64,000 nucleotides of DNA from Macrostomum lignano. Lineage: Eukaryota. Under the pieces are notes generated by a model. That model searched no databases and was not told the DNA's origin. It saw only the letters and a list, made by a program, of their open reading frames with translations. The stretch is from assembly GCA_002269645.1 (NCBI GenBank), contig NIVC01003107.1:55045-119044 (forward strand), in the 5' to 3' direction. A program made the translations under genes and the position numbers. Shown here piece after piece: positions 10,997 through 45,284 of this stretch (its first letter is position 1; each line of letters begins with the position of its first letter).

Positions 10997-11299
10997 CAGT
11001 TTTTTTACTTGACACGACTTGACTTCGTCAATTGTACATGCAATTCTGTACTATGTTATGCTGTATTAATGCTTATAAAACCTTACTCTAATAGTAATAA
11101 ACACAAATTAATTGCGTCGTCAAAAGCAAACAAAATTCTGTTTTTTTCTGGCTGCTGCATTTAATAATTAATTGGTTTAATTGTCTCATTTTTGTCGATA
11201 ATTTTTCAACCGCTTATTAGCTGGCGAGGCTTAAATTTCTCCGGCCGTTTACCCGAAAAAATCTAATTTCAGAAAAGTCTACTATTATTGAATTTGATA

Positions 11300-16046: not shown

Positions 16047-16204
16047 CGGTTTAAAATTTTGGTCAGCGCAGAGAGTTAATTAAATATAAATATGAGTATA
16101 TCTCTTTCAAAACTATTGTCGCTATATTTTATTGCGTCTGATTTTAATCAGGAAATTGATTGCTTTTTCACCAGTTTCGTTTTTTATTACTAGTCTTGTG
16201 GCCC

Positions 16205-18345
16205 TAGACCTTAGTGACCATAGACAAAACTGTCACACAGCACGGTCACCTTGGTGACCATAGACAAGACTGTCACACAGCACGGTCACCTTGGTGATCA
16301 GAGACAAAACTGTCACACAGCACGGTCACCTTGGTGACCCTAGACAAGACTGTCACACAGCACGGTCACTTTGGTGACCCTAGACAAGACTATCACACAG
16401 CACGGTCACCTTGGTAACCATAGACAAGACTGTCACACAGCACGGTCACCTTGGTGACCATAGACAAGACTGTCACACAGCACGTTCACCTTGGTGACCC
16501 TAGACAAGACTGTCACACAGCACGTTCACCTTGGGGACCATAGACAAGACTGTCACACAGCACGGTCACCTTGGTGACCATAGACAAGACTGTCACACAG
16601 CACGGTCACCTTGGTGACCATAGACAAGACTGTCACACAGCACGGTCACCTTGGTAACCATAGACAAGACTGTCACACAGCACGGTCACCTTGGTAACCA
16701 TAGACAAGACTGTCACACAGCACGGTCACCTTGGTAACCATAGACAAGACTGTCACACAGCACGGTCACCTTGGTGACCATAGACAAGACTGTCACACAG
16801 CACGTTCACCTTGGTAACCATAGACAAGACTGTCACACAGCACGGTCACCTTGGTGACCATAGACAAAACTGTCACACAGCACGGTCACCTTGGTGACCA
16901 TAGACAAGACTGTCACACAGCACGGTCACCTTGGTAACCATAGACAAGACTGTCACACAGCACGGTCACCTTGGTGACCATAGACAAAACTGTCACACAG
17001 CACGGTCACTTTGGTAACCATAGACAAGACTGTCACACAGCACGGTCACCTTGGTGACCATAGACAAAACTGTCACACAGCACGGTCACCTTGGTGACCA
17101 TAGACAAAACTGTCACACAGCACGGTCACCTTGGTGACCATAGACAAAACTGTCACACAGCACGGTCACCTTGGTGACCATAGACAAAACTGTCACACAG
17201 CACGGTCACCTTGGTGACCATAGACAAAACTGTCACACAGCACGGTCACCTTGGTGACCATAGACAAGACTGTCACACAGCACGGTCACCTTGGTGACCA
17301 GAGACAAAACTGTCACACAGCACGGTCACCTTGGTGACCCTAGACAAGACTGTCACACAGCACGGTCACTTTAGTGACCCTAGACAAGACTGTCACACAG
17401 CACGTTCACCTTGGTGACCCTAGACAAGACTATCACACAGCACGGTCACCTTGGTAACCATAGACAAGACTGTCACACAGCACGGTCATCTTGGTGACCA
17501 TAGACAAAACTGTCACATAGCACGGTCACCTTGGTGACCATAGACAAGACTGTCACACAGCACGTTCACCTTGGTGACCCTAGACAAGACTGTCACACAG
17601 CACGTTCACCTTGGTGACCCTAGACAAGACTGTCACACAGCACGTTCACCTTGGTGACCATAGACAAGACTGTCACACAGCACGGTCACCTTGGTGACCA
17701 TAGACAAGACTGTCACACAGCACGGTCACCTTGGTAACCATAGACAAGACTTTCACACAGCACGGTCACCTTGGTAACCATAGACAAGACTGTCACACAG
17801 CACGGTCACCTTGGTGACCATAGACAAGACTGTCACACAGCACGGTCACCTTGGTAACCAAAGACAAGACTGTCACACAGCACGTTCACCTTGGTGACCA
17901 TAGACAAAACTGTCACACAGCACGTTCACCTTGGTGACCATAGACAAGACTGTCACACAGCACGGTCACCTTGGTGACCATAGACAAGACTGTCACACAG
18001 CACGGTCACCTTGGTGACCATAGACAAGACTATCACACAGCACGGTCACCTTGGTGACCATAGACAAGACTGTCACACAGCACGGTCACCTTGGTGACTT
18101 TAGACAAAACTGTCACACAGCACGGTCACTTTGGTGACCCTAGACAAGACTGTCACACAGCACGGTCACCTTGGTGACTTTAGACAAAACTGTCACACAG
18201 CACGGTCACCTTGGTGACCATAGACAAAACTGTCACACAGCACGGTCACCTTGGTGACCATAGACAAAACTGTCACACAGCACGGTCACCTTGGTGACCA
18301 TAGACAAAACTGTCACAGCACGGTCATCTTGGTGGCCCTAGACAA
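16205..18345. repeat. 40-bp minisatellite (CACGGTCACCTTGGTGACCATAGACAAGACTGTCACACAG)n, about 53 copies, each with an internal palindrome
   Basis: Exact 40-bp register; GGTCACC-TT-GGTGACC inverted repeat in each unit; no spacers. Confidence 0.97.
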
Positions 18346-19104
18346 GTCTGTTACGCAATATTATCACCTGCACTGGTCACAGTGACAATACCACGATCAC
18401 AACTTTTTTTGGAAGGCTACCGAATATTGCTACTTGCAGTAGAGTAGTTTGGATTTAAAGATCAAAGTGATTAGCTTCACACTGCCGGTCTGGACGTACG
18501 TAGTTTTGCGTTGTTGGCATTCAAGGCCGGATGCTCTAAACGGGCAGCAGTTTTTAAGCCTCACGGGGTCACGCCAACACGCCTGACTCTGCTGAATATG
18601 CTGCTTTGATTTCTCTGCGAGCGAGCCAAACATTTTTTTAGATCGTTCGATCAGCCGTTCGTCGAAAATTGGCCAATTATACTGGCGCTATAAAATATAG
18701 ATTTTTATAATAAAAATAACGGCCGGCATTAGCGGCTCACGAAACAGCTCTAGTCTTTTGCGTGCGAAAATATCATTTTTGTTGGATGATTTACTCTAGG
18801 CTAAGTGCAGTTGCACAAACAGAAGGTTGAGGATTTGGCCCCGTTGGCTGGTGGGTATCTGCAGCTGCCAGATTAACTGTAGCTGCTTTTAGACCAGAAT
18901 TCCAAGCTTTTGAATTGCTTGTGTAGTTTTTTAGTTGTACATAATAAATGTTCTGGATGGGCATAATTAATTAATTAATTAAGGCAAAATGATTGGTTAT
19001 ATTTCAGAAATTTTTCTTGGCCTTAGCTTGCCCATTAAGAATCCCTTTTAGCGTAATTCATCAAATCCATCCAATCACGTTGCAGAGACCCCGGTCTCTA
19101 ACTT

Positions 19105-21762: not shown

Positions 21763-22823
21763 ATGCGAGCTCAGCTGGCGAGTTGCCTCATAATCCCCCT
21801 GCTGCCTCTGCTGCTCTTGCTCACCGTGGCGACATCCAACATCGATCCCGACGACTGCGGCTCCTGCGAAGCGGTGCCATCCTCCGCGTCGTCATCAGCC
21901 GCCTGCAGATGCGACGCGGACTGTCAGCAGCTCGGCGACTGCTGCTCGGACGCGGCGGCCCCATCGGAGTTCGTTGATCAGCAACAACTGTCGGTCTCCT
22001 GCCAGCCGCTGTCGCTCTGGTTCAACGCCTCTTCCGGAGAAGGCCTTGACAATGTCGGCTTGGCTGCTGTAGACTCCTGCCCGCCTGGCAGTCAGCATCC
22101 AGTCGATGACCTGTGCCGCCACGGCCCCGCTCTGCCCGTGCTGTCTGTCGGCGATGCCGGCAGACCCTTCCGCAACCCCGCCTGCGCTGTCTGTCACAGG
22201 CGCCGATTCGAGCTGCCAACCTCCGATGCGTCACCTCTGCAGCTGCGGCCCTGCTGGCGGAAGGTGACCGCCGACTGCCCCAACCAGTGGTGGAATTCCA
22301 CCGCAATGTCCTCAGCGGCTTCGTCGAATGTTGATCCTCGACTCTGGCGAGCTCGCCGACTGGTGAGAGACGCCTGCATCGGCGGGCCGTTCAGCGCACA
22401 CCGCGGCGGCCTGGACCTTCTGGGCGGGCCGGTGTACCGGAACAAGCACTGCGCCCTCTGCCACCAGGTGCTCCTGCCGGTCTGCCAGCCCGGCCTCTCC
22501 GCTGTCAAATTTGCCGCCAGATTTCTGCGGGCCAAACCGCTGGGACCAGTTTCTAAGACACTAGACGAAGCTCGACTGGCGCTGACCAGGCGCCTGTGCG
22601 CTCCCGACGGCGCCTACCCGGACAATTTCGGCCCATTGGCCGCTCTGGTGTTCGACTTTGACAGCCTGGAATGCCGGCCCGGACTCCAGTGGGCCGCCAG
22701 CGGCGGGAACTGCAGCCGGCTGGTGCTGACAGACTGGACTGCCGATCCGGCGCCTGATGGCAGCGGCAACGACAGCGCAGCTCTGGCTGATGACAGCGCC
22801 GTCCTGGTCATTGATGGGAGGCG
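21763..22823 (+). CDS. Signal peptide plus somatomedin-B-like and Cys-rich ectodomain exon; probably exon 1 of the 7TM receptor at 37913-40085
   Basis: Hydrophobic leader; CRCDADCQQLGDCCSD (SMB-like); two [FY]RNxxCAxCH repeats; phase-2 donor CG|GTGAGT at 22824. Confidence 0.85.
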
Positions 22824-22854
22824 GTGAGTGTCGGTGACGAGTCACATCAAATCA

Positions 22855-23085
22855 GTGTGGTGGGCCCCCTGGTGCCGGTGCCCCTGGTGCTGGCGCCCCT
22901 GGTGCTGGTGCCCCTGGTGCTGGCGCCCCTGGTGCTGGTGCCCCTGGTGCTGGCGCCCCTGGTGCTGGTGCCCCTGGTGCTGGCGCCCCTGGTGCTGGTG
23001 CCCCTGGTGCTGGCGCCCCTGGTGCTGGCGCTCCTGGTGCTGGCACCCCTGGTGCTGGCACCCCTGGTGCTAAAGCGCCTGGTGC
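22855..23085. repeat. 15-bp minisatellite (CCCTGGTGCTGG[C/T]GC)n
   Basis: Tandem units visible directly. Confidence 0.93.
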
Positions 23086-23089
23086 TAAA

Positions 23090-24765
23090 GATCATTACAA
23101 GTGAAATGGCACCCATTACAAATGAAATGACACCCATTACAAGTGAAATGGCACCCATTACAAATGAAATGACACCCATTACAAGTGAAATGGCACCCAT
23201 TACAAATCAAATGGCACCCATTACAAGTGAAATGACACCCATTACAAATCAAATGGCACCCATTACAAGTGAAATGGCACCCATTACAAATGAAATGACA
23301 CCCATTACAAATCAAATGGCACCCATTACAAGTGAAATGGCACCCATTACAAGTGAAATGGCACCCATTACAAGTGAAATGACACCCATTACAAATCAAA
23401 TGGCACCCATTACAAGTGAAATGGCACCCATTACAAGTGAAATGGCACCCATTGCAAATCAAATGACACCCATTACAAGTGAAATGGCACCCATTGCAAA
23501 TCAAATGACACCCATTGCAAATAAAATGGCACCCATTGCAAATCAAATGACACCCATTGCAAATAAAATGGCACCCATTGCAAATAAAATGGCACCCATT
23601 GCAAATAAAATGGCACCCATTGCAAATCAAATGACACCCATTGCAAATGAAATGGCACCCATTGCAAATAAAATGGCACCCATTGCAAATAAAATGGCAC
23701 CCATTGCAAATAAAATGGCACCCATTGCAAATCAAATGACACCCATTGCAAATCAAATGACACCCATTGCAAATAAAATGGCACCCATTGCAAATCAAAT
23801 AACACCCATTGCAAATCAAATGACACCCATTGCAAATCAAATGACACCCATTGCAAATAAAATGGCACCCATTGCAAATAAAATGGCACCCATTGCAAAT
23901 AAAATGGCACCCATTGCAAATAAAATGGCACCCATTGCAAATAAAATGGCACCCATTGCAAATAAAATGGCACCCATTGCAAATAAAATGGCACCCATTG
24001 CAAATAAAATGACACCCATTGCAAATAAAATGACACCCATTGCAAATCAAATGACACCCATTGCAAATCAAATGACACCCATTGCAAATAAAATGGCACC
24101 CATTGCAAATCAAATGACACCCATTGCAAATGAAATGGCACCCATTGCAAATAAAATGGCACCCATTGCAAATAAAATGGCACCCATTGCAAATAAAATG
24201 ACACCCATTGCAAATAAAATGACACCCATTGCAAATCAAATGACACCCATTGCAAATCAAATGACACCCATTGCAAATAAAATGGCACCCATTGCAAATC
24301 AAATGACACCCATTGCAAATAAAATGGCACCCATTGCAAATCAAATGACACCCATTGCAAATCAAATGACACCCATTGCAAGTGAAATGGCACCCATTGC
24401 AAATAAAATGACACCCATTACAAGTGAAATGGCACCCATTGCAAATAAAATGGCACCCATTGCAAATCAAATGACACCCATTGCAAATAAAATGGCACCC
24501 ATTACAAATGAAATGGCACCCATTGCAAATCAAATGGCACCCATTGCAAATGAAATGGCACCCATTGCAAATAAAATGGCACCCATTGCAAATAAAATGA
24601 CACCCATTGCAAGTGAAATGGCACCCATTGCAAATAAAATGACACCCATTACAAGTGAAATGGCACCCATTGCAAATAAAATGGCACCCATTGCAAATCA
24701 AATGACACCCATTGCAAATAAAATGGCACCCATTGCAAATAAAATGGCACCCATTACAAGTGAAA
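23090..24765. repeat. 21-bp minisatellite (CCCATTGCAAATAAAATGGCA)n, about 80 copies
   Basis: Tandem units visible directly. Confidence 0.97.
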
Positions 24766-26484
24766 CGACCCCCTGTTTGTGCACTTTTCAATCGTATTTC
24801 TTAAGCAAGCACCTTTTTTCGAATAGATTATTGGATGGACAGGACTAGCACAGCTCTATAAATCCATCAGCATGGTTCAGCCGATATCTCTCTGCAGCAC
24901 AGCAACTGGACTCTTCCCCACTACTGTCCTGTCCCATCATCCCCATCGCGTTTCCTATTCCGGCAATTTCTATGAGTTAACTGTGATCTAGACCGGGGGT
25001 AAGGGGGGGGAGAGGAGGCGGCATGGGATCTGGAAAGCGGCTGTCCAGGCAGGCAAAAAAGCCGGCCGCTCGTGGCCATGCAGCCAAATCCCCCCGCTGA
25101 CTGACTGAAAGAATAAATCAAGCAGATAATTTTCAATGGGTGAGGGAGGAGGAGGGAGGCCCGCAGAGCTGGGGGAGGGGGGGGGGGTTGCCGGTCGCCC
25201 TCGCGGTTTTGGCTACAGTAAGCGATGGTTATATAGTCGTACTCATAGTATTAGTAGTTTTAGTAGCAGCAGCAGTAGTATATAAAAACCTCAATAAGCA
25301 ATCGATTAATTGCTTTACAAAGTTGGTCGGTCCTGCGCTTCGCTTCCTACTCTTTGTGGGCAAATGCGGTGGCTTGGGATTTGAATTCAGAATGGGATCT
25401 GCTCCCAGATTATTATTTGTCTATCGATGACGGCGCGCGCAGAAAAAGCTGGATAATTGCTGCAGAGAAGCAAACAATTAGACTCTGATTGTGTTGCTAA
25501 TGTTACTTACATAGTACTATACATAAAGTAGCATAATATTATATAATTTCGCTATGAACGATTCGGGCCCACTGAAGCAAACTGACGGCTAGAGTAGTCT
25601 CAGCTGGATCTGCCCTAGCAACTAAAAATTGAGATTTTATTATAGAGAGTAATGAGTTATGGTAGAGTCGTGAGATATGAATATATATATGAATGAAGCT
25701 GTGAATGCGTCAATTTGATTTCATAGGCAATAAAAGAAAAGCAAAAGCTATTGACCGATATGTATCGAAAATGAATCTAACGATTTAATTTATTGTCACG
25801 AGAATATGAGCGTACGAAATCAAAATATTTTAAAATTATTTTGGGTGGCAAAAAGGTCTCCCTATTCCCGGAAATAGAAGATCTACTTTGTAATTTTCCC
25901 TCCAAGGCGATATGCCGATATGCATCGAAAGTAACTTAACGGAGCAGCAGTTTTCATTACAATCTTTATTACTACATACATATATGCCGACATGTATCGA
26001 AAATAGCTTTACTGCATTATTTTTTTAATATTATATATTTCCAACTCCGCGGGCTTCCGCGATAGAGAGAGGAGAGAAGATATAATGAGGAGAGACGGGC
26101 AGAGCAGCAATTAGTTGAGTACAGCAGAGTTCCGTGTCCGTGATGCAGCATTTGATGCGGCTGGCCAGCATCTCATAAAATATTCGCACGCAACGCTGAC
26201 AGGTCTGAGGGGTTGCAGAACAGCTCAACTTGACATGCTTCATATCTCGGGACCAGACGACTCAAACTTCAATGCAGACTGGCTGGCATAATCTCTTCTA
26301 CTGCTGTTTCTGAGCGCTCTTTGCGCATTTATTCAAATCATAAAACTGTCCATCAGTTTCGGGACCTGGCAGAATCCAGACCTGTCACCCTATTTTTATT
26401 AATTTTTCTGCACTTGATTGGCGATAACTATTAATAGCCACTAAAACAATGTACTTTAGCGGGCATAAAATAGTCTATAGTCTA

Positions 26485-26555
26485 TTCTCGGCTTATAGTC
26501 GGCTATAGCGTCTGCCTCGTGTGCGGCAGGACGCGGGTTCGAATCCCGGTAGGTA
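26485..26555 (+). other. Degenerate tRNA-like sequence (tRNA pseudogene or SINE head)
   Basis: B-box GGTTCGAATCCC at ~26536-26547; CTGCC/GGCAG stem with an 8-nt loop; poor acceptor stem. Confidence 0.35.
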
Positions 26556-26760
26556 AAAAATCATTTAAACTAAGCTTCAATATACTACTTCATTTCGAAT
26601 TAAAAAGCGAACTTGGTGAGTTGGGAAGGTTCAGATTTAATTTAATGAAACTGGAAGAAATCATCATCATAATTATAAGGTTTCAAACACACGGACAAAA
26701 AACAGTCAATGGCTTGAGCTCCATGAGCTCTTGAGCTCCATGGAAAAGTTCCCAAGATTT

Positions 26761-29700
26761 TCAAGCATCGAATTTGGCCAAAAAGTTCTCAAGGTTGCGA
26801 CCCTCGCGAGCCAGCACCCTGGCGTTGAGACGGGCGTTCTCCAGGGCCTGCTTGATGTTCCGTTCCGCCGAGGGCAGCGGGTTGGCCTGGAAGAACGTCT
26901 CGATGTCCTCTGCGTCCTCCGAGCTGCAGAAATTTTTGCACACCTGCTGCACCAGGCGACTCAGCAGGATCTGGCCGCGGAGCTTCTCCTGAAACCAGGC
27001 CCAGTTGCACTTGATGAAGCGCCAAGTGGCCCGGCGGGACTCAAGGCTGGCGCTGCTGACGCTGCCAAGAACGTAGATCGAATCCTGCAGGCGGACTTTG
27101 TCGCCGCTGACAACCAGCTGAAAGACCCGCTGGCGCAGCTGCGGATCCCGGCTGCTGCCCAGGCTGCGTTGGATTCGATCCTGGGGTTTCGTTTCCAAGG
27201 CGAAGATAGTTTTCAGACTGTTGGAGTTGACATGCTCATAAGCGCTAATCCACTCACGATCCCTAATGAGATTCCCGATCCCTGATCACTTAATCTCCCC
27301 AGATCCCTACTGCCCTCCAGATCCCTAATCCCCTCGAGATCCCTAATCCCCTCCAGATCCTTAATCCTCTCCAGATCCCTGATCCCCTCCAGATCCCTAA
27401 TCCCCTCAAGATCCCTAATTCTCTTCAGATCCATAATCCCCTCCAGATCCCCAATACCTCCAGATCCCTAATCCCCTCCAGATCCTTAATCCTCTCCAGA
27501 TCCCTGATCCCCTCCAGATCCACAATCCTCCACCTTGCTTCACCTTCTCCTCCTGCAAGTCGGTCTTGTCCATCAGATCAAGCGCAGCCTCGAACTCCGG
27601 ACCTCCACCGTTGGACAGCATAGTGCGGTAGATGCTGTCCCGCAGGTCGGCAGGTATGGCGCACTCCCCAGAGCAGTGCCGGGCAAACCTGGCCCGGGCC
27701 TCGGCCACCACTGACGGGTGTCCGGCCAGGCCAAGCGCGCGAATCAGCGCCGCCCTCAGCAGGGCGACGTCGTGCCCGTCGCCCGGTTGGGCGTCCCAGC
27801 CGCCGCAGCGCTGGAAGGCCGGCTCGCACAGCTGGCAGACGAAGCTGCGCCACTGCTGACTGAGGCCCAGCTGGTCCACAAGCACCTGGATAGTGGCGGC
27901 CAGGTTGTCAAGCAGGTCGGCCCAGACGGTGTAGAACTGCTCCACTTTGTAGGCGTCGACCACCTGCAGCAGCTGAACGATCGACAGTCGACCGGCCGAA
28001 AACAGCGCGAACAGATCGCTCTCCAGATTGAACCGGTCGCGTTGGCTGAGCTGGAAAAAATATCCAGATATATAGGTACAACAATAACCCGGGGAGTGAC
28101 TCTGGATGTGTCAGGAGAGTGACTCTGGATGTGTCAGGAGAGTGACTCTGAATGTGTCAAAAGAGTGACTCTGAATGTGTCAGGAGAGAGTGTGACTATC
28201 AACGTGTCAGAAGAGAGTGACTATCAATGTGCCAGGAGAGTGACTATCAATGTGCCAGGAGAGTGACTATCAATGTGTCAGAAGACTGACTATCAATGTG
28301 CCAGGAAAGTGACTATCAATGTGCCAGGAGAGTGACTATCAATGTGCCAGGAGAGTGACTATCAATGTGTCAGAAGAGTGACTATCAATGTGCCAGGAGA
28401 GTGACTATCAATGTGCCAGGAGAGTGACTATCAATGTGTCAGAAGAGTGACTCTGAATGTGTCAGAAGAGTGACTCTGAATGTGTCAGGAAAGTGACTAT
28501 CAATGTGCCAGGGGAGTGACTATCAATGTGTCAGAAGAGTGACTATCAATGTGCCAGGAGAGTGACTCTGAATGTGTCAGAAGAGTGACTCTGAATGTGT
28601 CAGGAGAGTGACTATCAATGTGTCAGGAGAGAGTGACTATCAATGTGCCAGGAGAGAGTGACTATCAATGTGTCAGAAGAGTGACTATCAATGTGTCAGA
28701 AGAGTGACTATCAATGTGTCAGAGGAGTGACTCTGAATGTGTCAGAAGAGTGACTCTGAATGTGTCAGGAGAGTGACTATCAATGTGTCAGGAGAGAGTG
28801 ACTATCAATGTGCCAGAAGAGTGACTATCAATGTGTCAGAGGAGTGACTCTGAATGTGTCAGAAGAGTGACTCTGAATGTGTCAGGAGAGTGACTATCAA
28901 TGTGTCAGGAGAGAGTGACTATCAATGTGTCAGAAGAGTGACTATCAATGTGTCAGAGGAGTGACTCTGAATGTGTCAGAAGAGTGACTCTGAATGTGTC
29001 AGGAGAGTGACTATCAATGTGTCAGGAGAGAGTGACTATCAATGTGCCAGAAGAGTGACTATCAATGTGTCAGAAGAGTGACTATCAATGTGCCAGGAAA
29101 GTGATTATCAATGTGCCAGGGGAGTGACTATCAATGTGTCAGAAGAGTGACTCCAACCTTCTGACAGTCACTCTCCTAAGTTTCCACCATGTGCTAACTG
29201 CAACAAATTCTACTTAATTTGCAGACACTGACGGAAAATGCCGATTGCCGATATGTAGTGATAAAAACTATTTCAAGGAAATAATAAAACATTTTTATAC
29301 TTATCGTACATATCGGGAATCGAGTGTATGAAATAATCAAAATATAAGTCATTAAAATGAATTCAACACCAACCTCTCCTACACGTATACTCGTGCCTCT
29401 CCCTTCCTTTTAAAGTTTAAATAAAAAAATTCAAAGCGTTGGGGAATCGAACCCGGGACCTGCCAGTAATGCTCTCTCTGTCACTCACCTGTCCCCGCTG
29501 CAGCGCAGCAATGAGATCCGTCAGCATCTCCTCGCTGTACAAAGTCCTGTAGACTCCAACAAAGCCAGGGTTCAGCTTCACCCAGGCCGCCTTTGGCACG
29601 CGAACTGCGGCCGACTTCTCCGTTAGCAACAGGTTTATCTTAACACCCTCGGCTGTCAGAACCTGGATTGGAACTCGCCAAGCTGCGAGGCTTGAGTTCG

Positions 29701-32700
29701 AGCCAAACTGGAATCGCTCCTGCGAGATGCTGAGCTCCAACTGCTGTCCATCATCATTGTCAGCGGGTTTGGCCGAGACGCTGATTAACGGATAGCCCAT
29801 CTGCTTCGTCCAGGTGCCCATCACGAAATCCACAGGCTGGCCAGAGGCCTCCTCGAGCGCTTTCCAAAGCTGCTCCGTCTGGGCATTTGAGTACTTGTGC
29901 CGGTCCAGGTAGCGGCTGAGGCCGTCGCGAAATGCCTCCTGGCCCAGCCATTCGTGCAGCATGCGGATCACCGAGGCGCCCTAAAATTATTTAAGAGCTT
30001 ATTAGTTTAACAGATAGGTAGTGGCAGATTTGCGAAAACGGCCCACTCAGGGACAGATGTGATAAAGCAGGCCATTTAGAAACAGATTTGATAAACCGGC
30101 CCATTTAGGTACGGAATTGCTAAACCGGCCCATTTAGGTACTGACAGATTTGATACGCTCGTAAAACAGGCCCTGAAAGATTTGATAAGACGGCCCGGCC
30201 CATTTAGGGACAGATTTGCTAAAACGGCCCATTTAGGTACGGATTTGCTAAAACGGCCCATTTAGGTACTGACAGATCTGACAAGCTTGTAAAACAGGCC
30301 ATTTAGGGAAAGATTGATAAAACAGGCCATTTAGAAACAGATTTGTTAAAACGGCCCATTTATGTACGGATTTGCAAAAACGGCCCATTTTGGGACAGCA
30401 TTTTTCAAACGGCCCATTTAAGCAACAGATTTGCTAAAAGGCCGTTGAAGTGTCGCTGACATTTCAAGCACAAAAACAGAAGCGTTTTTTAAAACAAACC
30501 TTGCAGTAGCTGATTGCGTCAAAAATCTCGTCAATCTCGCAGGGACTTCCAATTGGAACCTCGATCGGGTGGCTGCTGTCCAAAGCGTCAAGCACCAACG
30601 CTCTTGACAGGTCGCTCTTGACAAACCGAGTCCAAATGTCAAATTCTGGGTAGCATTGATCAACGCACAGGTATTGGATCCAGGAGGCGAAGCCTTCGTT
30701 TAGCCAGAGATGGGTCCACCATTGCATGGTAACCAGGTTGCCGAACCACTGGTGAGCCAGCTCGTGACCAACGATTAGGGCCACCTTACAGGTTAGAGAT
30801 GTGATTATTGGGGTAACACTATTGATAGTAAAAAAGTATGCGGTTACAGAGAATATAATTTATTGAATAACTGAGTTACTTAAGGGCGATTTCGAGGTAC
30901 TTCGGGAAATTCTGAGCTACTTGAGACGATTCTGAGGTACTTGGGGCGATTCTGAGGTACTTGGGGCGATTCTGAGGTACTTGGGGCGATTCTGAGGTAC
31001 TTGGGGCGGCGATTCTGAGGTACTTGGGGCGATTCTGAGGTACTTGGGGCGATTCTGAGGTACTTGGGGCGATTCTGAGGTACTTGGGGCGATTCTGAGG
31101 TACTTGGGGCGATTCTGAGGTACTTGAGGCGATTCTGAGGTACTTGAGGCGATTCTGAGGTACTTGAGGCGATTCTGAGGTACTTGGGGCGATTCTGAGG
31201 TACTTGGGGCGATTCTGAGGTACTTGAGGCGATTCTGAGGTACTTGAGGCGATTCTGAGGTACTTGGGGCGATTCTGAGGTACTTGGGGCGATTCTGAGG
31301 TACTTGGGGCGATTCTGAGGTACTTGGGGCGATTCTGAGGTACTTGGGGCGATTCTGAGGTACTTGGGGCGATTCTGAGGTACTTGAGGCGATTCTGAGG
31401 TACTTGAGGCGATTCTGAGGTACTTGGGGCGATTCTGAGGTACTTGGGGCGATTCTGAGGTACTTGAGGCGATTCTGAGGTACTTGAGGCGATTCTGAGG
31501 TACTTGGGGCGATTCTGAGGTACTTGGGGCGATTCTGAGGTACTTGGGGCGATTCTGAGGTACTTGGGGCGATTCTGAGGTACTTGAGGCGATTCTGAGG
31601 TACTTGGGGCGATTCTGAGGTACTTGGGGCGATTCTGAGGTACTTGGGGCGATTCTGAGGTACTTGGGGCGATTCTGAGGTACTTGGGGCGATTCTGAGG
31701 TACTTGGGACGATTCTGAGGTACTTGGGGCGATTCTGAGGTACTTGGGGCGATTCTGAGGTACTTGGGGCGATTCTGAGGTACTTGGGGCGATTCTGAGG
31801 TACTTGGGGCGATTCTGAGGTACTTGGGGCGATTCTGAGGTACTTGGGGCGATTCTGAGGTACTTGGGGCGATTCTGAGGTACTTGAGGCGATTCTGAGG
31901 TACTTGAGGCGATTCTGAGGTACTTGAGGCGATTCTGAGGTACTTGAGGCGATTCTGAGGTACTTGAAGCGATTCTGAGGTATTTGGGGCGATTCGAGAC
32001 ACTGGGGCGATTTTGAGGTACCTGAGGCGATTCTGAGACACTGGGGCGATTTTGAGGTACTTAAGGCGATTCTGAGATACTTAAGGCGATTCTGAGATAC
32101 TTAAAACGATTCTGAGATACTTAAGGCGATTCTGAGGTACTTAAGGCGATTTTGAGATACTTAAGGCGATTCTGAGGTACTACTTCAAATAGAAGCCATA
32201 TCAGAGATAGTTGATAATAAAGCTGACTGAATGTAACCATAAATTTCATTAAAATTAAAAATGAACTTGATTACGTCAACAACGGAAGCTCCGCCTTGGC
32301 TCGGTGTGCTCACCCGTTCTTTAGTAGCCGCACTGGAGTTGTCGGTGTCCACCAGCAGCGCAGTCTCGCGGTAGGTGACCAGACCCCAGTTCTCCATGGC
32401 CCCGAACGCCAGGTCCGGCACAGCGACAAGATCCAGCTTAGGCAGGGGATAGGCGACGCTGAAAAAGTCCTTATAAAATGGCAGAGTCTTCCTAGCAACG
32501 TCCAGCGCGAATCGGCCCTGCTCCCGCCGGCCAGCCGGGGTGTAAACTCGCAGTAGAACATTGTCGGAGTCGAAATCTTCGACGTAGTCGAATCTGCCTA
32601 CGGCGAACGCCAGCAGATAGGTGGACATGATCGGTGACTGCTGGAACTTCACCGAGACAAGACCGCTGGAGATGTCCGATCGGCTTTGCTCCGGCATGTT

Positions 32701-33347
32701 GGAAAGCGCTATGAGGTCTTTGTCCACTAGCATAGTGACATCGAAGGTTGCCTTCAGCTCCGGCTCGTCCCAGCAGGGCAGGCAGCGGCGGGCGTCGGTT
32801 GGCGCGAACTGGGTGACGGCGCAGCGAACCTCGGCGCCAGTGCTGGAGTCGGTGTACACCGTCCGGTAGAAACCCTTCATACGATTGTTCAGAGCGCCGC
32901 TGAATGACAGGCTGAGCTGGCCCCGACCGACTGGCAGGGCCGAGTTGAATGACAGCTTGACGGTCTCCTCGGGTTCGTTGAAGCTGATTTCAGCCTCGGC
33001 TGCAAGGGGGATATGCGATGGGATCTTTGAAAACCTCTCGGCATGTCAATACAATCAAATATAGCATTTGAATAGGTGCAATTAACTTTACCATACTAAA
33101 AATTGGCAATGAAATATTTAACTTTCTACTTAGGCACTTTTTCAGGAGTAGCTAGTTACGAAAATGAATCCATTTATTTAAAATACAGGAACTCACCATC
33201 GTTGAATTTTGCTGTTTCAATTTCGAGTTCGGCTGAATTCAACACCAAACTGTTGGTTGGTTCAATGATCTGGATGAGAAGAATCGGTTTACACTTTAAA
33301 TTACTAGAAAACAGATAAGTCGTGCGCACACAGACAACCTGACAAAC

Positions 33348-33379
<32 letters not shown>

Positions 33380-33408
33380 CACAGACAGACAGACAGACAG
33401 ACAGACAC

Positions 33409-33483
<75 letters not shown>

Positions 33484-36400
33484 TGTAATATTTTATTCCT
33501 TGCCTTAGAGGCAGTCTGAACTGTTAGCAATCGTGACAAATAATTAGCTGAATCATCGTATTGATTTAATGTACGTTCGCTCTCTATGTACATCGCAGGC
33601 TTAACTTCAACTTGCATAAATAAAGCGATCACTGCCTCACGGGGCCTTCGTGTTTTTGGTGCTGCCAAATACCGCGTGTTACAAGTGGTAGCAGAGCGTA
33701 CTATGGCAGAGGGCGGCAGTCACCGTGCGATTCCTAGGGCGTTCAGCTCAGGCAACTTTAAGGAGTGGCTCCAGCGGTTTGAGCTGTGCGCGGCAGCCAA
33801 CAAGTGGGTAAATGACAAGCATTTGCACCTGCCAACGTTTTTGGATGGTGAGGCTCTGGCTGTTTTTCTTGAGCTCGACGAGAATAGCAAGAGCGACTAC
33901 AGCAAAGTGACCAAAGCTCTGAGCCAGGCATTTCACCCGGACAGCCAGAAATTCTCAGCGCTGGATGCATTTGAGAACCGGAAGCTGCTGCCGGGCGAAT
34001 CTCCTCGACTCTTTCTCTATCACCTGAAGCAGCTGCTAAAGGACGCGGGCATCAGCGAGGCAGGCGCAACGGCCACCATGCTGACTCACCAGTTCATCCG
34101 CGGACTGCCGGAGGACATCAGCAAGCAGATCAGAGCGGACGCGTCAGCCAAGACCGTGAGTGACGCTCTCGCACGGGCACAACTGCTACTGGAGCTGCCT
34201 TCTGCCACCACGGACGGATTCAAGCAGCCTCTTGCAGCGGCAGCCGGAGCTGCAGGCAGCGCGGAGACTGCATAACTGCGGGCTGCGGTCAGCTCGCTGC
34301 AGGCGACCGTCCAAGACCTGGCGGCGAAGCTGGGCTCAGAGGTTTCGGACTCCTGCGCGATTCGCAGTGCGAGGAGACAGCGCGAGGTGACCTGCTGGAA
34401 CTGCCACCGCCGCGGTCACATCGCCAGGAACTGCAATCAGCCGTCGGGAAACGGCAAAGGCCGGGGCAGAGCCCGCACCCCTGGCCAGTTCTGAGCGCGG
34501 GCCCCAGCGTGAGTGGGTTGTTCCTGGGCGCAGAGGGGAGCGGTGCAGCCAGCAGCAGCGCAGCGGCAGTCGTCATCAGGCCGAACTCGGCGACATCCAA
34601 GCTGCAGTGCAGGATCGGAGGCGCGGACGTCACGGCGCTTATCGACTCAGGCAGCCAGGTGTCAATCGTGGACAAGCGGGTCCTGCAGAGCATGCGGCCA
34701 GCTCAGCTGGAGAGCGTGCACCTGGAGCTGCGGGCAGTCAACCAGCAAGCGGTGCCGGTGCGGCAGGTGGCCAGCCTGGCGGTGTCGCTCGGTGGCATCG
34801 AGCGGCGGCACCCGTTTTACGTGTCTGAAGGTCTGGTTGCTGCCGTCATCATCGGGCTGGACTTCATCAAGGCCTGCAACATGTGCCTGGACTTCAGCGA
34901 CAGTGCAGCAGAGACCCCATCAAAGGACTCTTGTGTGATCAACGGCGTGAGTCACCTCGATGCTGACAGTCAGCTCGAGGACATTGAAGAGAAGCTGGTG
35001 CCGGATTTCACCAAGGAGGAGATCGACCTGCCAGTCGCGGAGGACCCGGACATCCGAGCTTTGGTGCGCGAGTTCAGTGACATTTTCACCAGGCGGCCAG
35101 GGCTGACGGATCGACACGAGCACAGCATCCCGCTGACTGACGATGTCCCGGTGCGGATTCCGCCGAGGAAGCTGCCGGTGCACTGGGAGCCCGAGGTGAG
35201 GAAGTTGATTCAGGAGCTGCTGGACAATGACGTCATCGAGGAGTCGGACAGCCCGTACGTGGCGACCCCAGTGTACGTGCGGAAGAAGAACGGTGACCTG
35301 CGGTTGACGATCGATTACCGCGAGCTGAACAAGAAGACGGTGCGGTCAGCGCAGGGCATTCCGCAGATGGACTTCGTCAAGGACAAGTTGGCTGGCAACG
35401 AGATTTTCTCGGTGATCGACCTGAACGGCGGCTACTTCCAAATTCCGATGAAGCCGGAAGACAAGCAGAAGACGGCCTTCAGCCCAGGGCCCGGAATGCC
35501 GCTGTACCAGTTCAAGCGGATGCCGCAGGGCGTCTGCGGCGGCCCGAGCTCGTTCACCATCCTAATGAACCGCGTGTTCAAAGGCGCCGCGCAGACCTTC
35601 ACCTACATGGACGACACGCTGTGCTTCTACAGATCGAAGGCTGAGCATCTCCGGCACCTGCGAGAAGTCTTCGAGAAGATCAGAGGCGCTGGGCTCACCG
35701 TCCGAGGCAGCAAGTGCCAGCTAGGCCTGCCGGAGGTCACTTTTCTCGGCACCGTGTTCTCGGCTAAGGGTGCCACCGTGAGCCCTGAGAAGGTGCGCGC
35801 TATCCAGGAGTGGCCGATACCGCATTCGCCAACGCAGGTGCGGCAGTTCCTGGGCCTCTGCAACCAGTACAGGAAGTACGTGCCGAGCTTCTCCGACATC
35901 GCCGGGCCGCTGCACAGACTGACGAGCAAAACAGAGAAGTTCGAGTGGACCAGCGAGTGCGGCACGGCATTCCGACGTCTCAAGGAGGCCCTGCAGCAGC
36001 CGCCGATCATCGGCCACCCGGATTTCTCCAAGGAGTTCCAGCTCTACACGGATGCCAGCAACACCGGAGTCGGCATCGTGCTCAAGCAAGGAGACCAGGT
36101 GATTGAGTACTGCAGCAGAGCGCTTACGGCACCGGAGAAGGGCTACTCAACTGTCGAGAAGGAGTGCCTGGCTATCCTGCACGCCCTGAAGACCTACAGG
36201 CACTACCTGCTTGGCCGGCACTTCACGGTCTTCACCGACCACTGCCCGCTCACGTTTTTGAATTCTCAGCGGGTCGACAGCCATGGCCGGCTTGGGCGCT
36301 GGCGGTTGCTGCTGCAGGAGTTCGCCTTCACCATCAAGTATACCAAGGGCGTCGACAACGTGGAGGCGGACGGCCTGTCCAGGATGCACGAAAGCCACGG

Positions 36401-36723
36401 CGAGGTGATCGGAGCGTCGGCAACGGAGCTACAGCCGAAGGTGTCCAATCAGGAGATGCGGCAGGCGCAACTTGCCGATCCGAAGCTCAAGCTGGTCCTC
36501 GCGGCGCTGGAGAAGGACAGCACGACGCCACCAAGATGGTCGGACACCAGCCTGAGACACCTCAGCCGCATCTGGCGGAAGCTGAGGATCCAAGATGGCT
36601 TTCTCTGCCGGGCATTCAACGACGCCGCAGGACCGAGAGACGTTCCTGTGATTCCGGAGTCGCTGCGGCGCCAGTTCCTGACCGACTTCCACGAAGGCAT
36701 CGGCGGCCACTTCGGGCCAGAGA

Positions 36724-36800
<77 letters not shown>

Positions 36801-36909
36801 CAGACAGACAGACAGGCAGACAGACAGACAGACAGACACACAGACAGACAGACAGACAGACAGACACAGACAGACAGACAGGCAGACAGACAGACAGACA
36901 GACAGACAT

Positions 36910-36951
<42 letters not shown>

Positions 36952-37095
36952 CTGTTAATTAGCAGACCTTACCTCAACAGTAACAACCTGCTGCCCCTTA
37001 AACGTGAAGTCCAGCAAGTTTGGCGTCAATGTCAAATTGTAATTAATCGGCCTCGAATGAGTTGGCAATTTTTTGAATTCAGTTTTGCCGGACAT
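26761..37095 (-). CDS. NPEPPS: Puromycin-sensitive aminopeptidase (M1 family); exons 37095-36973, 33269-33197, 32999-32314, 30784-30500, 29980-29489, 28050-27544, 27180-26761
   Basis: KLP...[19 protein letters not shown] start; MKGFYR; DARR..PCWDEP; [13 protein letters not shown]; [27 protein letters not shown]; [20 protein letters not shown]; TWTKQMGYP. All six junctions are GT-AG and in phase. Confidence 0.95.
27290..27520. repeat. 18-bp minisatellite (ATCCCCTCCAGATCCCTA)n in NPEPPS intron 6
   Basis: Tandem units visible directly. Confidence 0.9.
28090..29155. repeat. ~23-bp minisatellite (GAGTGACTATCAATGTGTCAGAA)n in NPEPPS intron 5
   Basis: Tandem units visible directly. Confidence 0.95.
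30040..30440. repeat. Degenerate ~28-bp tandem repeat (AAACGGCCCATTTAGGTACGGATTTGCT) in NPEPPS intron 4
   Basis: Recurring GGCCCATTTA / GATTTG cores. Confidence 0.8.
30880..32185. repeat. 20-bp minisatellite (GATTCTGAGGTACTTGGGGC)n in NPEPPS intron 3
   Basis: Exact 20-bp register. Confidence 0.97.
33331..33483. repeat. (GACA)n microsatellite, left flank of the retrotransposon
   Basis: Direct observation. Confidence 0.97.
33703..34494 (+). CDS. gag: Retrotransposon gag with CCHC zinc knuckle, interrupted by an in-frame TAA at 34273-34275
   Basis: [25 protein letters not shown] (gag-like); [14 protein letters not shown] at ~34393-34434 lies in the same frame after the stop. Confidence 0.85.
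34446..36726 (+). CDS. pol: Retrotransposon pol (aspartic protease, reverse transcriptase, RNase H, integrase N-terminal His-His), in the -1 frame relative to gag
   Basis: ALIDSGS; [10 protein letters not shown]; [10 protein letters not shown]; YQFKRMPQG; YMDD; LYTDAS; EKECLA; FTDH; ADGLSR; [14 protein letters not shown], then it runs into GACA repeats. Confidence 0.93.
36725..36951. repeat. (GACA)n microsatellite, right flank of the retrotransposon
   Basis: Direct observation. Confidence 0.97.
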
Positions 37096-37544
37096 TTTCA
37101 ACTTTCAGTAACAATGGCGTCTGTTTTGATTTGAAGTGCGGGTTTAGGCGGTGCAGTGGCATGCATAAGTTTGAGCAGAACCATTGGCTGTTTTATGTAG
37201 GCTTTTCATAGCAGCACATGCTGTCAGCTGTCACACTGATAACAGGTGCAACAGCAATGCTACACTTTTGATAATTACGATTACTAAGTTTGCTATAGAA
37301 GTTGCAAGCCTATTACGAGCGTTATATTAACTACCTGAAGCTAGCAAAATAGGACACTTAATTAGTGGCATGCACGGGAGTTGAAAAGAAATAATATTAA
37401 AGGTTCTCTATTAACTACATAACGAATTTACACTCCACTAGTGCATAGTACATGTTTAGTTTCGTGACTGATTTCAAAGTATAACTTATCGCTTCATTTA
37501 ATAATGCAGATCTCGTTTGCAAAATTGCTAGGCTATGATTCTTA

Positions 37545-37890
37545 AGGTTTTCGAGAGTGATTCTTAGAAAATCAAGAAAGTGACTCCACCTGTCAGAAAT
37601 TTTTACTTTTGGTGTCTTTTAGTGACACTATAAATTTTGAGTGTCAGAGAGCTACTTTTTAATCGCCGGAGAGGACTCTTAAAGTGTCAGAAGAGTGACT
37701 GATAATGAGCCAGGAGAGTAATTCTTAAAGTGTCGAAGAGTAACTGTCAAAATCCCGGGGTGACTCTCAATGTATCAGGAGAGTGACTCTCACAGTGCTG
37801 GAGAGTGATTTTCAAAGTGCCGGAGAGTGACTTAAAGTGCTGAAGAGTGACTCTTAAAGTGCCGGAGAGTGACTCAAATTGCCGAAGAGT
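37545..37890. repeat. Degenerate GAGAGTGACT-core tandem repeat
   Basis: Recurring (G)AGAGTGACT cores at ~21-24 bp spacing. Confidence 0.75.
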
Positions 37891-37912
37891 GTCCGTTTCC
37901 ACCATCCCGCAG

Positions 37913-40085
37913 CATCCCCACCAAGCGGCTTCAGCCGGGCAGCTTCCTTCTGCCGCTAAGCCGCCATCAATCTGCAGGTCCGCTCCGTCGGCTGCTTCTG
38001 TGCATTGAAGAGGCCGACAGGCTGTCTCAGCTGGCCGAAGACCAGGCTGGAGCAGCAGCCGCCGCCGCCTTCCCAACCTCTACCTGGACCCGACTCGAGC
38101 TGGGACTTCGCGTGGGCGGCTGCCTTCTCTCGCTGACCGCCCTGGCGGCGGCTGCCGTCGCCGCGTTCGCCAAAACCGACGGTCGCCGTCGAAGATGGCG
38201 CCGACTGACCGCGGCCGAGTTGAACGCCTGCGTGGCATTCGGCCTCGAGGAGGCCTGCGCCGCGGTTGCCAGCAGCATGACAGCCGGCCTGACTGCCTGT
38301 CGAGTGGTTGCCGCGCTCCGGCACTGGCTGGGACTGGCGCGGGCCTGCGCCCTGCTGCTGCTGACGCTGGATCAGTGGCGCCGGCTTCGGCGTCGTCTGT
38401 CAGCACCGCAGCGTCGGGACGTTCAACAGCAGCAACAACAGCTGCAGCAGCAGCAGGAGCATCAACGGCATCGCCAGTTTCAACGACGCCGGCGGGATCG
38501 GAGACTGCAGCGGACTCGGACAGCCGCCAGGCTGGGGCTGGCCTGGCTGGCGCCGCTGCTGCCCGCCGCCACCGTCTGGCTGATCGAGGCCGCCTCCGCT
38601 GCCGCGGTGCTGGGACCGGTGCGCACCGCCTGCTTCTTTTTGGTCCCAGTTGTGCCTTGTACCTCATATATTCCTGCTAGATCGCATTTATCCCCTTTAG
38701 ATCCCATTTATCCCGTCTAGATCCCATTTATCCTCTTTAGATTCCATGCATCCCCTCTAGATCCTGTTTATTCCCTCTAGATCCCATTTATCCCGTCTAG
38801 ATCCCATTCATCCCCTCTAGAACTCATATATTCCATTTAGATCTCATTTATTCCCTCTAAATCCAATTTATCCCCTTTAGATCCCATTTATGCCCTCCAA
38901 ATCCCATTTATGCCCTCCAGATCCCATTTATTCCCTCCAGATCCCATTTATCCCATTTATCCTCTTTAGATTCCATGCATCCCCTCTAGATCCTGTTTAT
39001 TCCCTCTAGATCCCATTTATCCCGTCTAGATCTCATTCATCCCCCTAGAACTCATTTATTCTCTCTGGATCCCATTTATCCCGTCTAGATCCCATTTATC
39101 CTCTTTAGATTCCATTCATCCCCTCTAGATCCCATTTATCCTCTTTAAATTACATGCATTCCCTCTAGATCTCATTTATTCCCTCTAGATCCCATTTATC
39201 CTCTTTAGATTCCATTCATTCCCTCTGGATCCCATTTATCCATTATATTCAACCCTTCTAAATTCTATTTATCGCCTCTATATTGTATTGATCCCATTTT
39301 ACAAGATCCTAGATGCCCAATCTCACTCTACATGCATGATATCCTCCCGGTATTTCTATCGACCTAAATTTATTCGACAAGCTTTTATTTTAGCTATTAC
39401 CAATAGACTATAAATGTAGAATTTAGTGTACAAAGATTAGAAATTTTGGCCCTCCATACACGGCGGCACCAGTCAGCTCTTCAAAACCCAACGCCCCTAT
39501 CCATATCCCGCACTCCAGCCGCCGGAGCGGCCGTTCTACTGCGCGCCAGTTCATCAGCAGCAGCCGCAGCCGTCGCTATCCAACCCGGCCGCTTTCGCAG
39601 CCGCCTCTCTGGCGCCGCACTGCGCCCTGCTAGGCGCCGCCGCCGTCCTACTAGCCGCCGCCTGGCGACGTCTCCGACGCGCCGACTCCGACTCGGTGTC
39701 GTTCGAACTCAGGCCGGAGCGACATCGGGCCAGACTGCACGCCTGTCTGGTGGCGGCCTCGGCCGCGGCCTGGTCGGCCAGCCTGGCCGGTCGGTTCGTC
39801 GTCGAACGGCCGGCGACGCTGTCAAGAAATCTGGCGGCCGGCGCAGATTTCGCAGCCTGCGGCGCCCTGTTCGGCTTAGCCTGCCTGCTGCCGATGAGGT
39901 GGCGGCTGGCCGCGGCTACACCCGACACCAACTGCAACGACGACCACGCATTGGGCGAAGCCTCGGTCAACGCCTCGGATGCGGACATTGTTGACGCAGC
40001 GTCGACCATCGTCGTGATTGGCGGTGGATCGACTGGCGCGACAGGTGCCGACGCGGCCGTCGGGAAACTGCTGACTGATGAATAA
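37913..40085 (+). CDS. Divergent class-B/adhesion/Methuselah-like 7TM receptor domain; exons 37913-38618, 39519-40085
   Basis: TM1 GGCLLSLTAL; TM2 ELNACVAFGL; TM3 ACRVVAALRHWLGLARACALLLLTLDQWRRL (compare the class-B consensus ACRVVAVLLHYFFLASFFWM); TM4 GLAWLAP; further hydrophobic TM5-7 in the last exon; phase-0 GT-AG intron 38619-39518. Confidence 0.75.
38680..39245. repeat. 20-bp minisatellite (AGATCCCATTTATCCCCTCT)n in the receptor intron
   Basis: Tandem units visible directly. Confidence 0.9.
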
Positions 40086-45256: not shown

Positions 45257-45284
45257 CTAGGGATTGCAGGAGTGGTTGCAGTTT

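Follow-up and report, generated by a model that had tools for sequence, protein, structure and literature searches.

Introduction

Genes nested on the opposite strand of a host gene are well known in animal genomes, and so are guest genes with a transposon in one of their introns; examples of nesting include EVI2A, EVI2B and OMG in human NF1, F8A in intron 22 of F8, and many cases in Drosophila. Another described system consists of receptors that combine an ectodomain of the Pfam family PF28443 (DUF8401) with a seven-transmembrane (7TM) domain of the Pfam 7tm_2 type, represented by Strongylocentrotus purpuratus XP_011676777.2 (LOC105444343), by Halichondria panicea LOC135345926 and by numerous other sponge sequences; in these receptors the 7tm_2 match is clear (E 1e-22 to 1e-27), and ectodomain and 7TM domain are encoded in one exon. 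The locus addressed here lies in a stretch of 64,000 nucleotides (nt) of the genome of Macrostomum lignano, a free-living flatworm and hidden polyploid, on contig NIVC01003107.1 of assembly GCA_002269645.1 (100% identity over 22 kb), the whole of this stretch being referred to below as the window. The Mlig017832 locus within it contains, in nested order, an ectodomain exon on the plus strand, a complete aminopeptidase gene related to NPEPPS on the minus strand and two membrane exons, again on the plus strand. This arrangement is best read as one unannotated, lineage-derived receptor-like gene with a 15.1-kb intron, a reading to which a probability of roughly one half may be given and for which we infer splicing, expression and signalling.

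Organization of the nested locus

A sequence-only reading of the window had placed an entire seven-exon antisense NPEPPS gene between the two parts of a receptor gene of lophotrochozoan origin, and this layout of receptor halves around an antisense aminopeptidase is real. The source is M. lignano, a flatworm; all seven aminopeptidase exons are contained in 22824-37912, so that the coding region is wholly enclosed between consecutive putative host exons, and the product of these exons is identical to PAA53280.1. Ectodomain exon, antisense aminopeptidase and membrane exons follow one another in the same order in the window copy (L003) and in two further genomic copies of the region, L002 (NIVC01002430.1) and L004 (NIVC01000043.1).

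The individual parts were also located as described in that reading. The ectodomain exon ends in phase 2 at CG/GTGAGT (22823; the slash marks a splice junction here and below), the acceptor at 37913 is phase-matched to it, and joining the three plus-strand exons gives 2334 nt, that is 777 codons and a stop. The expectation that no 7TM exon precedes the aminopeptidase gene was borne out, as neither a DUF8401 nor a 7tm_2-like coding piece besides the described exons, nor any GC-rich plus-strand open reading frame (ORF) besides a retroelement, was found in 22824-37912, and no hidden 7tm_2 exon was found elsewhere in the 64-kb window. The aminopeptidase ATG, estimated to lie some 800 nt from the receptor acceptor, is 818 nt away from it, and the retrotransposon reported within the aminopeptidase gene is a gypsy-like fragment in intron 1. 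Agreement in phase between 22823 and 37913 is, taken alone, a one-in-three chance event; the non-trivial part of the layout is the occurrence of a receptor ectodomain without a 7TM domain beside a seven-helix ORF without a start, on the same strand.

The ectodomain exon

The first exon opens with an ATG at 21763 and comprises 1061 nt, corresponding to 353 codons plus 2 nt, its donor being in accordance with the cis-donor motif GT[G/A]AG given for M. lignano in PMC8629364. An exhaustive phmmer search of 1.84 billion cluster representatives returned six matches, all over amino acids (aa) 10-158 (E 3e-6 to 8e-4) and all of them DUF8401 proteins. Three of the six are full receptors, in which a somatomedin B (SMB)-like module is combined with a pair of [FY]RNxxCAxC modules and with 7tm_2 as defined in Pfam. 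A hidden Markov model (HMM) built from 49 members of the family matches the ectodomain at E 8.5e-26 over aa 14-148, with a second module at aa 197-236, and every invariant column of the DUF8401 framework (CxCDxxCxxxxDCC, CP, two copies of G..[FY]RNxxCAxC, RxC) is present in the window protein; the Pfam Somatomedin_B match is sub-threshold. Judged by these profile matches, the ectodomain is a bona fide member of Pfam PF28443/DUF8401. Its mature form contains an odd number of cysteines, 21, and the next one on the extracellular side is encoded in the first membrane exon (exon A), which would weakly favour a single protein.

A profile search identified 53 relatives with PF28443, mostly sponge proteins together with the sea urchin XP_011676777, and 45 of them also carry 7tm_2. 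The sequence-only reading had regarded the combination of an SMB-like module, YRNxxCAxC repeats and a 7TM domain as a recurring lophotrochozoan architecture; the architecture exists, in the form of PF28443/DUF8401 with 7tm_2, but it occurs mainly in sponges and the sea urchin and is not specifically lophotrochozoan. A literature search found no paper on DUF8401/PF28443.

The UniProt entry A0A1I8IUL0 (1665 aa), from the older ML2 annotation, fuses aminopeptidase exons to antisense ORFs of the ectodomain exon (21810-22815, minus strand) and continues into minus-strand pieces at 12343-18642. This fusion appears to be an artefact of ab initio prediction in DNA that is rich in GC and poor in stops, and illustrates the errors to which ab initio models are prone at this locus.

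The membrane exons

Exon A begins behind the acceptor ccaccatcccgcAG/C, the strongest polypyrimidine acceptor of the region (15 of the 20 upstream nucleotides are pyrimidines), in a phase that accepts the donor at 22823. It has no signal peptide and no in-frame ATG in its first 113 codons or before the second hydrophobic segment, and a search of 37096-37912 for a 5' exon supplying an ATG found nothing convincing, just micro-exons with poor donors. Its second cytoplasmic loop carries a CAG-rich insert of about 33 aa dominated by Q and R. The second membrane exon (exon B) ends with a TAA at 40083-40085, and an AATAAA hexamer begins at this stop. Together the two exons encode seven hydrophobic segments (Kyte-Doolittle, predicted helices) whose loop charges fit an N-out orientation under the positive-inside rule, and the helix-3 cysteine, the loop-2 cysteine and the helix-4 tryptophan are present.

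Coding character and constraint

The three receptor exons have a GC content at third codon positions (GC3) of 0.74-0.76 (0.74 in exon A), and codon usage selects the proposed frame in all three, as it does in the aminopeptidase gene. The ectodomain exon is 98% identical in L002 and L004, with in-frame indels only, and exon A is identical to L004 at 100% of its nucleotides. Across the three copies, the 2.3-kb receptor ORF shows no frameshift and no stop, its sole length changes being two shared 9-nt indels, at a substitution level similar to that of the non-coding flanks, which have 2-4 gap openings per 600 nt. Pooled over copies, the changes in this ORF amount to about 13.5 synonymous and 12 nonsynonymous, with a ratio of nonsynonymous to synonymous rates (dN/dS, omega) of 0.25-0.5; the binomial probability of the synonymous excess is 0.008 over the entire ORF, 0.02 in the ectodomain and 0.13 in the membrane part. 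These omega values are no higher than those of the aminopeptidase control, 0.35-0.69 among the three near-identical copies, and the high aminopeptidase dN/dS fits a relaxation of selection on duplicated genes in this polyploid genome.

A proposed single receptor-like gene and what weighs against it

Under the one-gene reading, a receptor pre-mRNA would start upstream of 21763 and be read antisense through the aminopeptidase gene, and the donor at 22823 would be joined to the acceptor at 37913 across the 15.1-kb intron. The first exon ends in CTGGTCATTGATGGGAGGCG and exon A starts with CATCCCCACCAAGCGGCTTC, so the predicted junction reads CTGGTCATTGATGGGAGGCG/CATCCCCACCAAGCGGCTTC. Exon 1 would provide a DUF8401 ectodomain entering the secretory pathway and the two later exons a seven-helix bundle resembling the one in G protein-coupled receptors (GPCRs), with the N-terminus of the product predicted outside the cell and its C-terminus inside. 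Mlig017832 would be transcribed independently, in the opposite orientation, from within the receptor intron, and its window copy would have acquired the truncated gypsy-like element in the (CTGT)n tract of intron 1. Several observations argue for one gene. In those 45 of the 53 family members, DUF8401 precedes a 7TM domain within one polypeptide; the ectodomain ORF ends exactly on the consensus donor G/GTGAGT; and beyond this donor the plus strand offers, besides the retroelement, nothing coding-like but the seven-helix ORF, which lacks a start and a signal peptide and opens at a strong, phase-matched acceptor. The coding signature common to the exons, the nested order and reading frame kept in three copies, and the loop charges fitting an N-out GPCR speak for the same reading.

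Other observations weigh against this reading. No transcript, protein model or orthologue joining both receptor parts was found in the collections searched, and neither of the M. lignano annotations contains the receptor, nor do the 1.84 billion cluster representatives; a word-indexed search with the joined protein also gave no match, probably because it was swamped by low-complexity words. If exon 1 is left unspliced the ectodomain frame stops at once, because a TGA (22825-22827) lies inside the donor, giving an ORF of 354 codons. The putative intron contains 39 sense AATAAA hexamers, as against 0-1 in each aminopeptidase intron, and 33 of them belong to a 21-mer minisatellite (23093-24759) which has the hexamer in many of its units and extends from 0.3 to 1.9 kb past the donor. 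Within the DUF8401 family, ectodomain-only proteins occur in spiders and one mussel, the spider protein P0198 also being 354 aa long; no intron interrupts the sponge gene, and in the urchin gene a single exon covers DUF8401 through helix 6. An intron position conserved with these relatives was considered and rejected, given that neither gene has an intron at the junction point. The donor between exons A and B, CCG/GTGCGC (junction CTGCCGCGGTGCTGGGACCG/CCGCCGGAGCGGCCGTTCTA), is weak, and copy L002 carries a 4.7-kb long interspersed nuclear element (LINE) inside the CAG run of exon A (L002:3700-8700, about window 38425-38455).

The class of the membrane domain adds to these difficulties. No match to 7tm_2, a domain well conserved in the other family members, was found in the membrane exons by Pfam at E<=10, the whole-family HMM (49 members) gave no signal, and a 7TM-only family HMM scored the membrane part at -1 to -3.5 bits, with p 0.05-0.09 against controls shuffled within each helix and loop; in hhalign the membrane part against the family gave P 0.26. 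Collinear identities at conserved 7tm_2 columns (23 of 84, alignment A3) were discarded as not exceeding these segment shuffles, and a stalk motif across the junction, NCS...GRPLxC, which appeared suggestive by eye and in hhalign, was discarded after a dedicated HMM gave negative scores. Pfam 7tm_1 is the top match in four of five real variants, at E 0.15-0.32 and 11-12 bits for the native sequence and at E of about 1e-4 and 22 bits, below the gathering score of 30.5, once the Q/R loop is trimmed. None of 15 segment shuffles matches 7tm_1, but the evidence for 7tm_1 is weak because one of the 15 reached E 7e-4 against an unrelated family. The best PDB match comprises helices 3-4 of the muscarinic M1 receptor (E 0.013), and phmmer found no homologue of the membrane part among the 1.84 billion cluster representatives. 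By reading, the rhodopsin hallmarks are degenerate, with DQW for DRY, AWSA for CWxP and LPMRW for NPxxY. The label "class-B-like", previously attached to this domain, is therefore not supported, since significant 7tm_2 or family 7TM similarity is lacking and the sub-threshold matches are of the rhodopsin type; the predicted topology is GPCR-like, in a sequence too diverged (rich in Ala, Arg and Leu, with a poly-Q/R loop insert) for class assignment.

A single-sequence AlphaFold model of the membrane part is of low confidence (predicted local distance difference test score, pLDDT, 50; predicted template modelling score, pTM, 0.29). The model guided by a multiple sequence alignment (MSA) has a confident DUF8401 core and a helical bundle with pLDDT 65-92 that matches adhesion and class A GPCRs in Foldseek at E 2.6e-5 and weaker, a result that speaks for the one-gene reading but is biased by the 7tm_2 alignment. 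Structure gives no support for continuity between the two parts, because the junction falls in a region of low confidence (aa 260-408).

Two separate transcription units as a possible alternative

A first alternative, which appears rather unlikely, holds that the region contains two separate transcription units, one for a secreted DUF8401-only protein and another for an independent gene made of the membrane exons. The first unit would encode a protein of 354 aa that terminates with the TGA at 22825 or else by way of a short terminal exon, for which there is a candidate at 24827 (junction CTGGTCATTGATGGGAGGCG/ATTATTGGATGGACAGGACT), and would be polyadenylated in or after the AATAAA-rich minisatellite. 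DUF8401-only proteins do exist, spider P0198 of equal length among them, and both the in-frame stop at the donor and the 33 hexamers just downstream of the ectodomain exon fit such a protein, as does the lack of an ancestral intron at the junction point in the family; a terminal coding exon, on the other hand, has no reason to end its ORF on a consensus donor.

The second unit would be an orphan gene, possibly rhodopsin-like, whose transcription diverges from that of the aminopeptidase out of their common 818-nt interval and whose transcript is trans-spliced to the spliced leader (SL) at CTTCAG/CCG (37935), the SL AUG serving as start codon. In M. lignano, according to PMC8629364, roughly 30% of genes undergo trans-splicing, with an SL whose last three nucleotides are ATG and with YTNCAG as the motif of the acceptor; use of the SL AUG as an initiator in flatworms is described by Cheng et al. 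2006 (cited in PMC9851317). Trans-splicing at 37935 would create a start codon, because the SL ends in ATG and CTTCAG/CCG is in frame. This site is the only in-frame YTNCAG before helix 1, and it would open a 262-codon ORF to the end of exon A; dependence on an SL-donated AUG is, however, a minority situation, and the stronger acceptor at 37913 would put the SL AUG out of frame, in an ORF of 32 codons. The junctions predicted for a trans-spliced membrane gene read ...TTATTGCATG/CCGGGCAGC or /CATCCCCACC, and likewise AAGACTCAATTTATTGCATG/CCGGGCAGCTTCCTTCTGCC or /CATCCCCACCAAGCGGCTTC.

A membrane domain that is not recognisably 7tm_2, with 7tm_1 and muscarinic M1 helices 3-4 as its best matches, would suit a gene unrelated to the ectodomain, but the 7tm_1 evidence is weak, one segment shuffle in 15 having reached E 7e-4 against an unrelated family. 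A gene sharing the promoter region of the aminopeptidase would moreover be expected to be expressed enough for annotation, yet it is unannotated, and two units require the coincidence that an ectodomain lacking its 7TM domain lies beside a seven-helix ORF lacking a start and a signal peptide, on the same strand.

A decaying relic as a further, improbable alternative

It is also conceivable, if quite improbable, that the parts represent a decaying relic, in which a rearrangement or an insertion put the aminopeptidase segment into an ancestral single-exon DUF8401-7TM gene and so disrupted it, the ORFs surviving, with or without some splicing but in either case without a functional product, because the event or the polyploid duplication was recent and GC-rich DNA is stop-poor. 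Phase agreement would be automatic if an insertion had split one exon, but the boundaries carry good splice signals and do not resemble arbitrary breakpoints. Decay is suggested by the degenerate GPCR motifs (no CWxP or GWGxP besides DQW and LPMRW), the low-complexity Ala/Arg composition with its CAG-repeat loop insert, the LINE in exon A of L002 and an exon substitution rate close to that of the flanks; against these stand a 2.3-kb ORF free of frameshifts and stops in three copies whose flanks have repeated gap openings, and an omega and synonymous excess no worse than in the functional aminopeptidase gene. The GC-rich exons also have long ORFs antisense and in their remaining frames, but codon usage selects the proposed frame in each of the three. 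A relic would agree with the absence of the receptor gene from both annotations and of any homologue of the membrane part; the locus of an older aminopeptidase paralogue, however, bears no receptor remnant and hence no sign of a pre-insertion state.

Finally, a real splice joining the DUF8401 ectodomain to a membrane domain that is truly not 7tm_2, being rhodopsin-like or an unclassifiable seven-helix module, would imply recent GPCR domain shuffling by gene nesting, via a new 15-kb intron engulfing a whole housekeeping gene, and is a long shot, the ectodomain being tied in all other cases to a secretin/adhesion-type 7TM domain.

The aminopeptidase gene

The aminopeptidase is encoded by exons 37095-36973, 33269-33197, 32999-32314, 30784-30500, 29980-29489, 28050-27544 and 27180-26761, all bounded by GT-AG introns, and its product of 861 aa is that of PAA53280.1 (P0143). 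It contains, in order, the Pfam domains Peptidase_M1_N, Peptidase_M1 and ERAP1_C (E 6e-30 to 3e-38) and the motifs GAMEN (aa 265), HELAH (aa 301) and WLNEG (aa 321), with an intact HExxH(18)E zinc site. NPEPPS proteins from molluscs to vertebrates share these domains and motifs and are about 50% identical over the full length; in contrast to NPEPPS at large, the guest has at least one diverged paralogue in M. lignano, Mlig013866, to which it is 70% identical. The Mlig013866 locus (L001) lies between SRP54 and leucyl-tRNA synthetase, and no receptor remnant was found there, so that the nesting is specific to the Mlig017832 locus. As NPEPPS is a cytosolic housekeeping enzyme, the suggestion that a peptide receptor and a peptidase are co-regulated here finds no support.

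Logan transcripts related to the region (L008 and L009, from SRR30276812 and SRR30276804) derive from a related, distant Macrostomum species and encode the Mlig013866-type paralogue (79% identity to P0008). They begin with ...TGCGAAGACTCAATTTATTGCATG, the same SL 3' end as in M. lignano; on the receptor they are uninformative. In the 3' flank of the aminopeptidase (about 26515-26590, minus strand) and in its intron 5 (about 29440-29475, minus strand), tRNA-like stretches were noticed (GGTTCGAATCC/GGTTCGATTCC, T-arm-like); ARAGORN called no tRNA in them, and they may be short interspersed nuclear elements or tRNA-derived fragments.

Transposable elements, repeats and flanking genes

Full Ty3/gypsy elements have two long terminal repeats (LTRs), gag, and a pol arranged as protease, reverse transcriptase, RNase H and integrase, and the window element is a truncated fragment of such an element. 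It has a 5' LTR-like leader of about 200 nt with a primer-binding-site-like TGGTAGCAGAGC, a gag-like ORF (33586-34275) and an ORF for protease, reverse transcriptase and RNase H (34509 to about 36720), with Pfam matches to RVT_1, RT_RNaseH and aspartyl protease; neither an integrase domain nor a 3' LTR was found in it, and no flanking direct repeat was found besides the microsatellite. The pol ORF runs straight into the repeat, and therefore the insertion is truncated or the assembly is mis-joined at the microsatellite. The element is present in the window copy only: the intron that contains it (window 33270-36972) consists of pure (CTGT)n in L004 (10124-10687, about 0.56 kb) and L002 (10124-14155, about 4 kb). 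The LINE of L002 has an intact ORF of 1647 aa for endonuclease, reverse transcriptase and RNase H, a (CAA)n tail and a target duplication of about 11 nt, and is in sense orientation.

Minisatellites with units of 15-23 nt fill nearly every intron and spacer of the region. A 22-23-nt minisatellite containing GAGTGACT, related to that upstream of the 37913 acceptor, was also observed in aminopeptidase intron 5 (28094-29152, 45 copies). The features of the locus and its neighbours are compiled in Table 1.

Table 1. Positions of the receptor-like parts, the aminopeptidase gene, repeats and neighbouring genes in the window.
Feature	Position	Strand	Basis
Receptor-like exon 1: signal peptide, SMB-like CxCDxxCxxxGDCC module, two [FY]RNxxCAxC motifs	21763-22823	+	translation, DUF8401 profile
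Putative receptor intron, 15,089 nt; donor GTGAGT, acceptor ccaccatcccgcAG	22824-37912	+	splice motifs
Two minisatellites directly 3' of exon 1: 15-mer x14.7 (22866-23086), 21-mer x79 (23093-24759)	22866-24759		
NPEPPS-like M1 aminopeptidase BOX15_Mlig017832g2, complete	26761-37095	-	Pfam, spliced model
(ACAG)n microsatellite, low-coordinate flank of retroelement	33330-33483		
3'-truncated Ty3/gypsy-like LTR retroelement, aminopeptidase intron 1	33484-36723	+	ORFs, Pfam
(AGAC)n microsatellite, other flank of retroelement; pol ORF runs into repeat	36724-36951		
22-nt minisatellite, GAGTGACT-type, just upstream of 37913 acceptor, in shared 818-nt interval	37665-37891		
CTTCAG, matching SL acceptor motif YTNCAG; SL AUG at 37935 would be in membrane frame	37929-37934	+	
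Membrane exon A: 60-aa extracellular stretch, hydrophobic helices 1-4, Q/R-rich insert	37913-38618	+	hydropathy, codon usage
Intron between membrane exons: donor GTGCGC, acceptor cactccAG; 20-nt minisatellite 38677-39241	38619-39518	+	
Membrane exon B: extracellular loop with Cys, helices 5-7, 60-aa tail	39519-40085	+	hydropathy, codon usage
BCAS2; two DnaJ-domain genes (one with proline-rich, cornifin-like repeat)	9421-9963, 11288-14495	+	flanking genes
MRPL9-like gene; PSMD2/RPN1	44310-45257, 49035-55050	-	flanking genes

Comparison with known systems and significance

What is new at this locus is an unannotated DUF8401-type receptor-like gene in a flatworm, together with an unusually diverged membrane domain. 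Should the splice prove real, the annotation of M. lignano would gain a gene that it now lacks, and the relatives found by the searches reported here would gain their first flatworm DUF8401-type receptor; the locus would also provide a clean example of three-level nesting, of host, guest and transposon, in a polyploid genome, with three copies in differing states: one without a retroelement, one with a retroelement in the guest and one with a LINE in a host exon. The biological weight of the case is modest, because opposite-strand nesting is common and no functional link between receptor and peptidase is indicated.

With the DUF8401 and 7tm_2 receptors the Macrostomum parts share a signal peptide, the SMB-like CxCDxxCxxxGDCC module and a pair of [FY]RNxxCAxC motifs, followed by a stalk and seven helices; they differ in that no 7tm_2 is detectable in the membrane part, and in that 15 kb containing another gene lie between it and the ectodomain. 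Adhesion GPCRs have a GAIN/GPS domain directly before helix 1, unlike the Macrostomum receptor parts: Pfam scans of the ectodomain and exon A found no GAIN domain or GPCR proteolysis site (GPS), and the DUF8401 relatives likewise have none. The membrane part resembles the lineage-specific flatworm orphan rhodopsin-like GPCRs PROF1 and fwRhods (PMC6114109) in its seven helices, its marginal 7tm_1 similarity and its lack of a non-flatworm homologue. At least two of the ubiquitous rhodopsin motifs are retained in those families, of which PMC6114109 reports none from Macrostomum; in the Macrostomum membrane part, by contrast, DRY, CWxP and NPxxY are all degenerate and 22 bits are reached against a gathering score of 30.5. 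A membrane ORF devoid of its own ATG, with an in-frame YTNCAG acceptor at 37935, recalls flatworm genes initiated from an SL AUG, but at 37913, the stronger acceptor, that AUG would fall out of frame. Nested genes of animals are like the present arrangement in that a complete opposite-strand gene lies between two host exons and bears a transposable element in its own intron. In contrast to NF1 and F8, the host splice is putative here, and the guest, a large housekeeping gene of seven exons, greatly exceeds its putative host in conservation and in quality of annotation.

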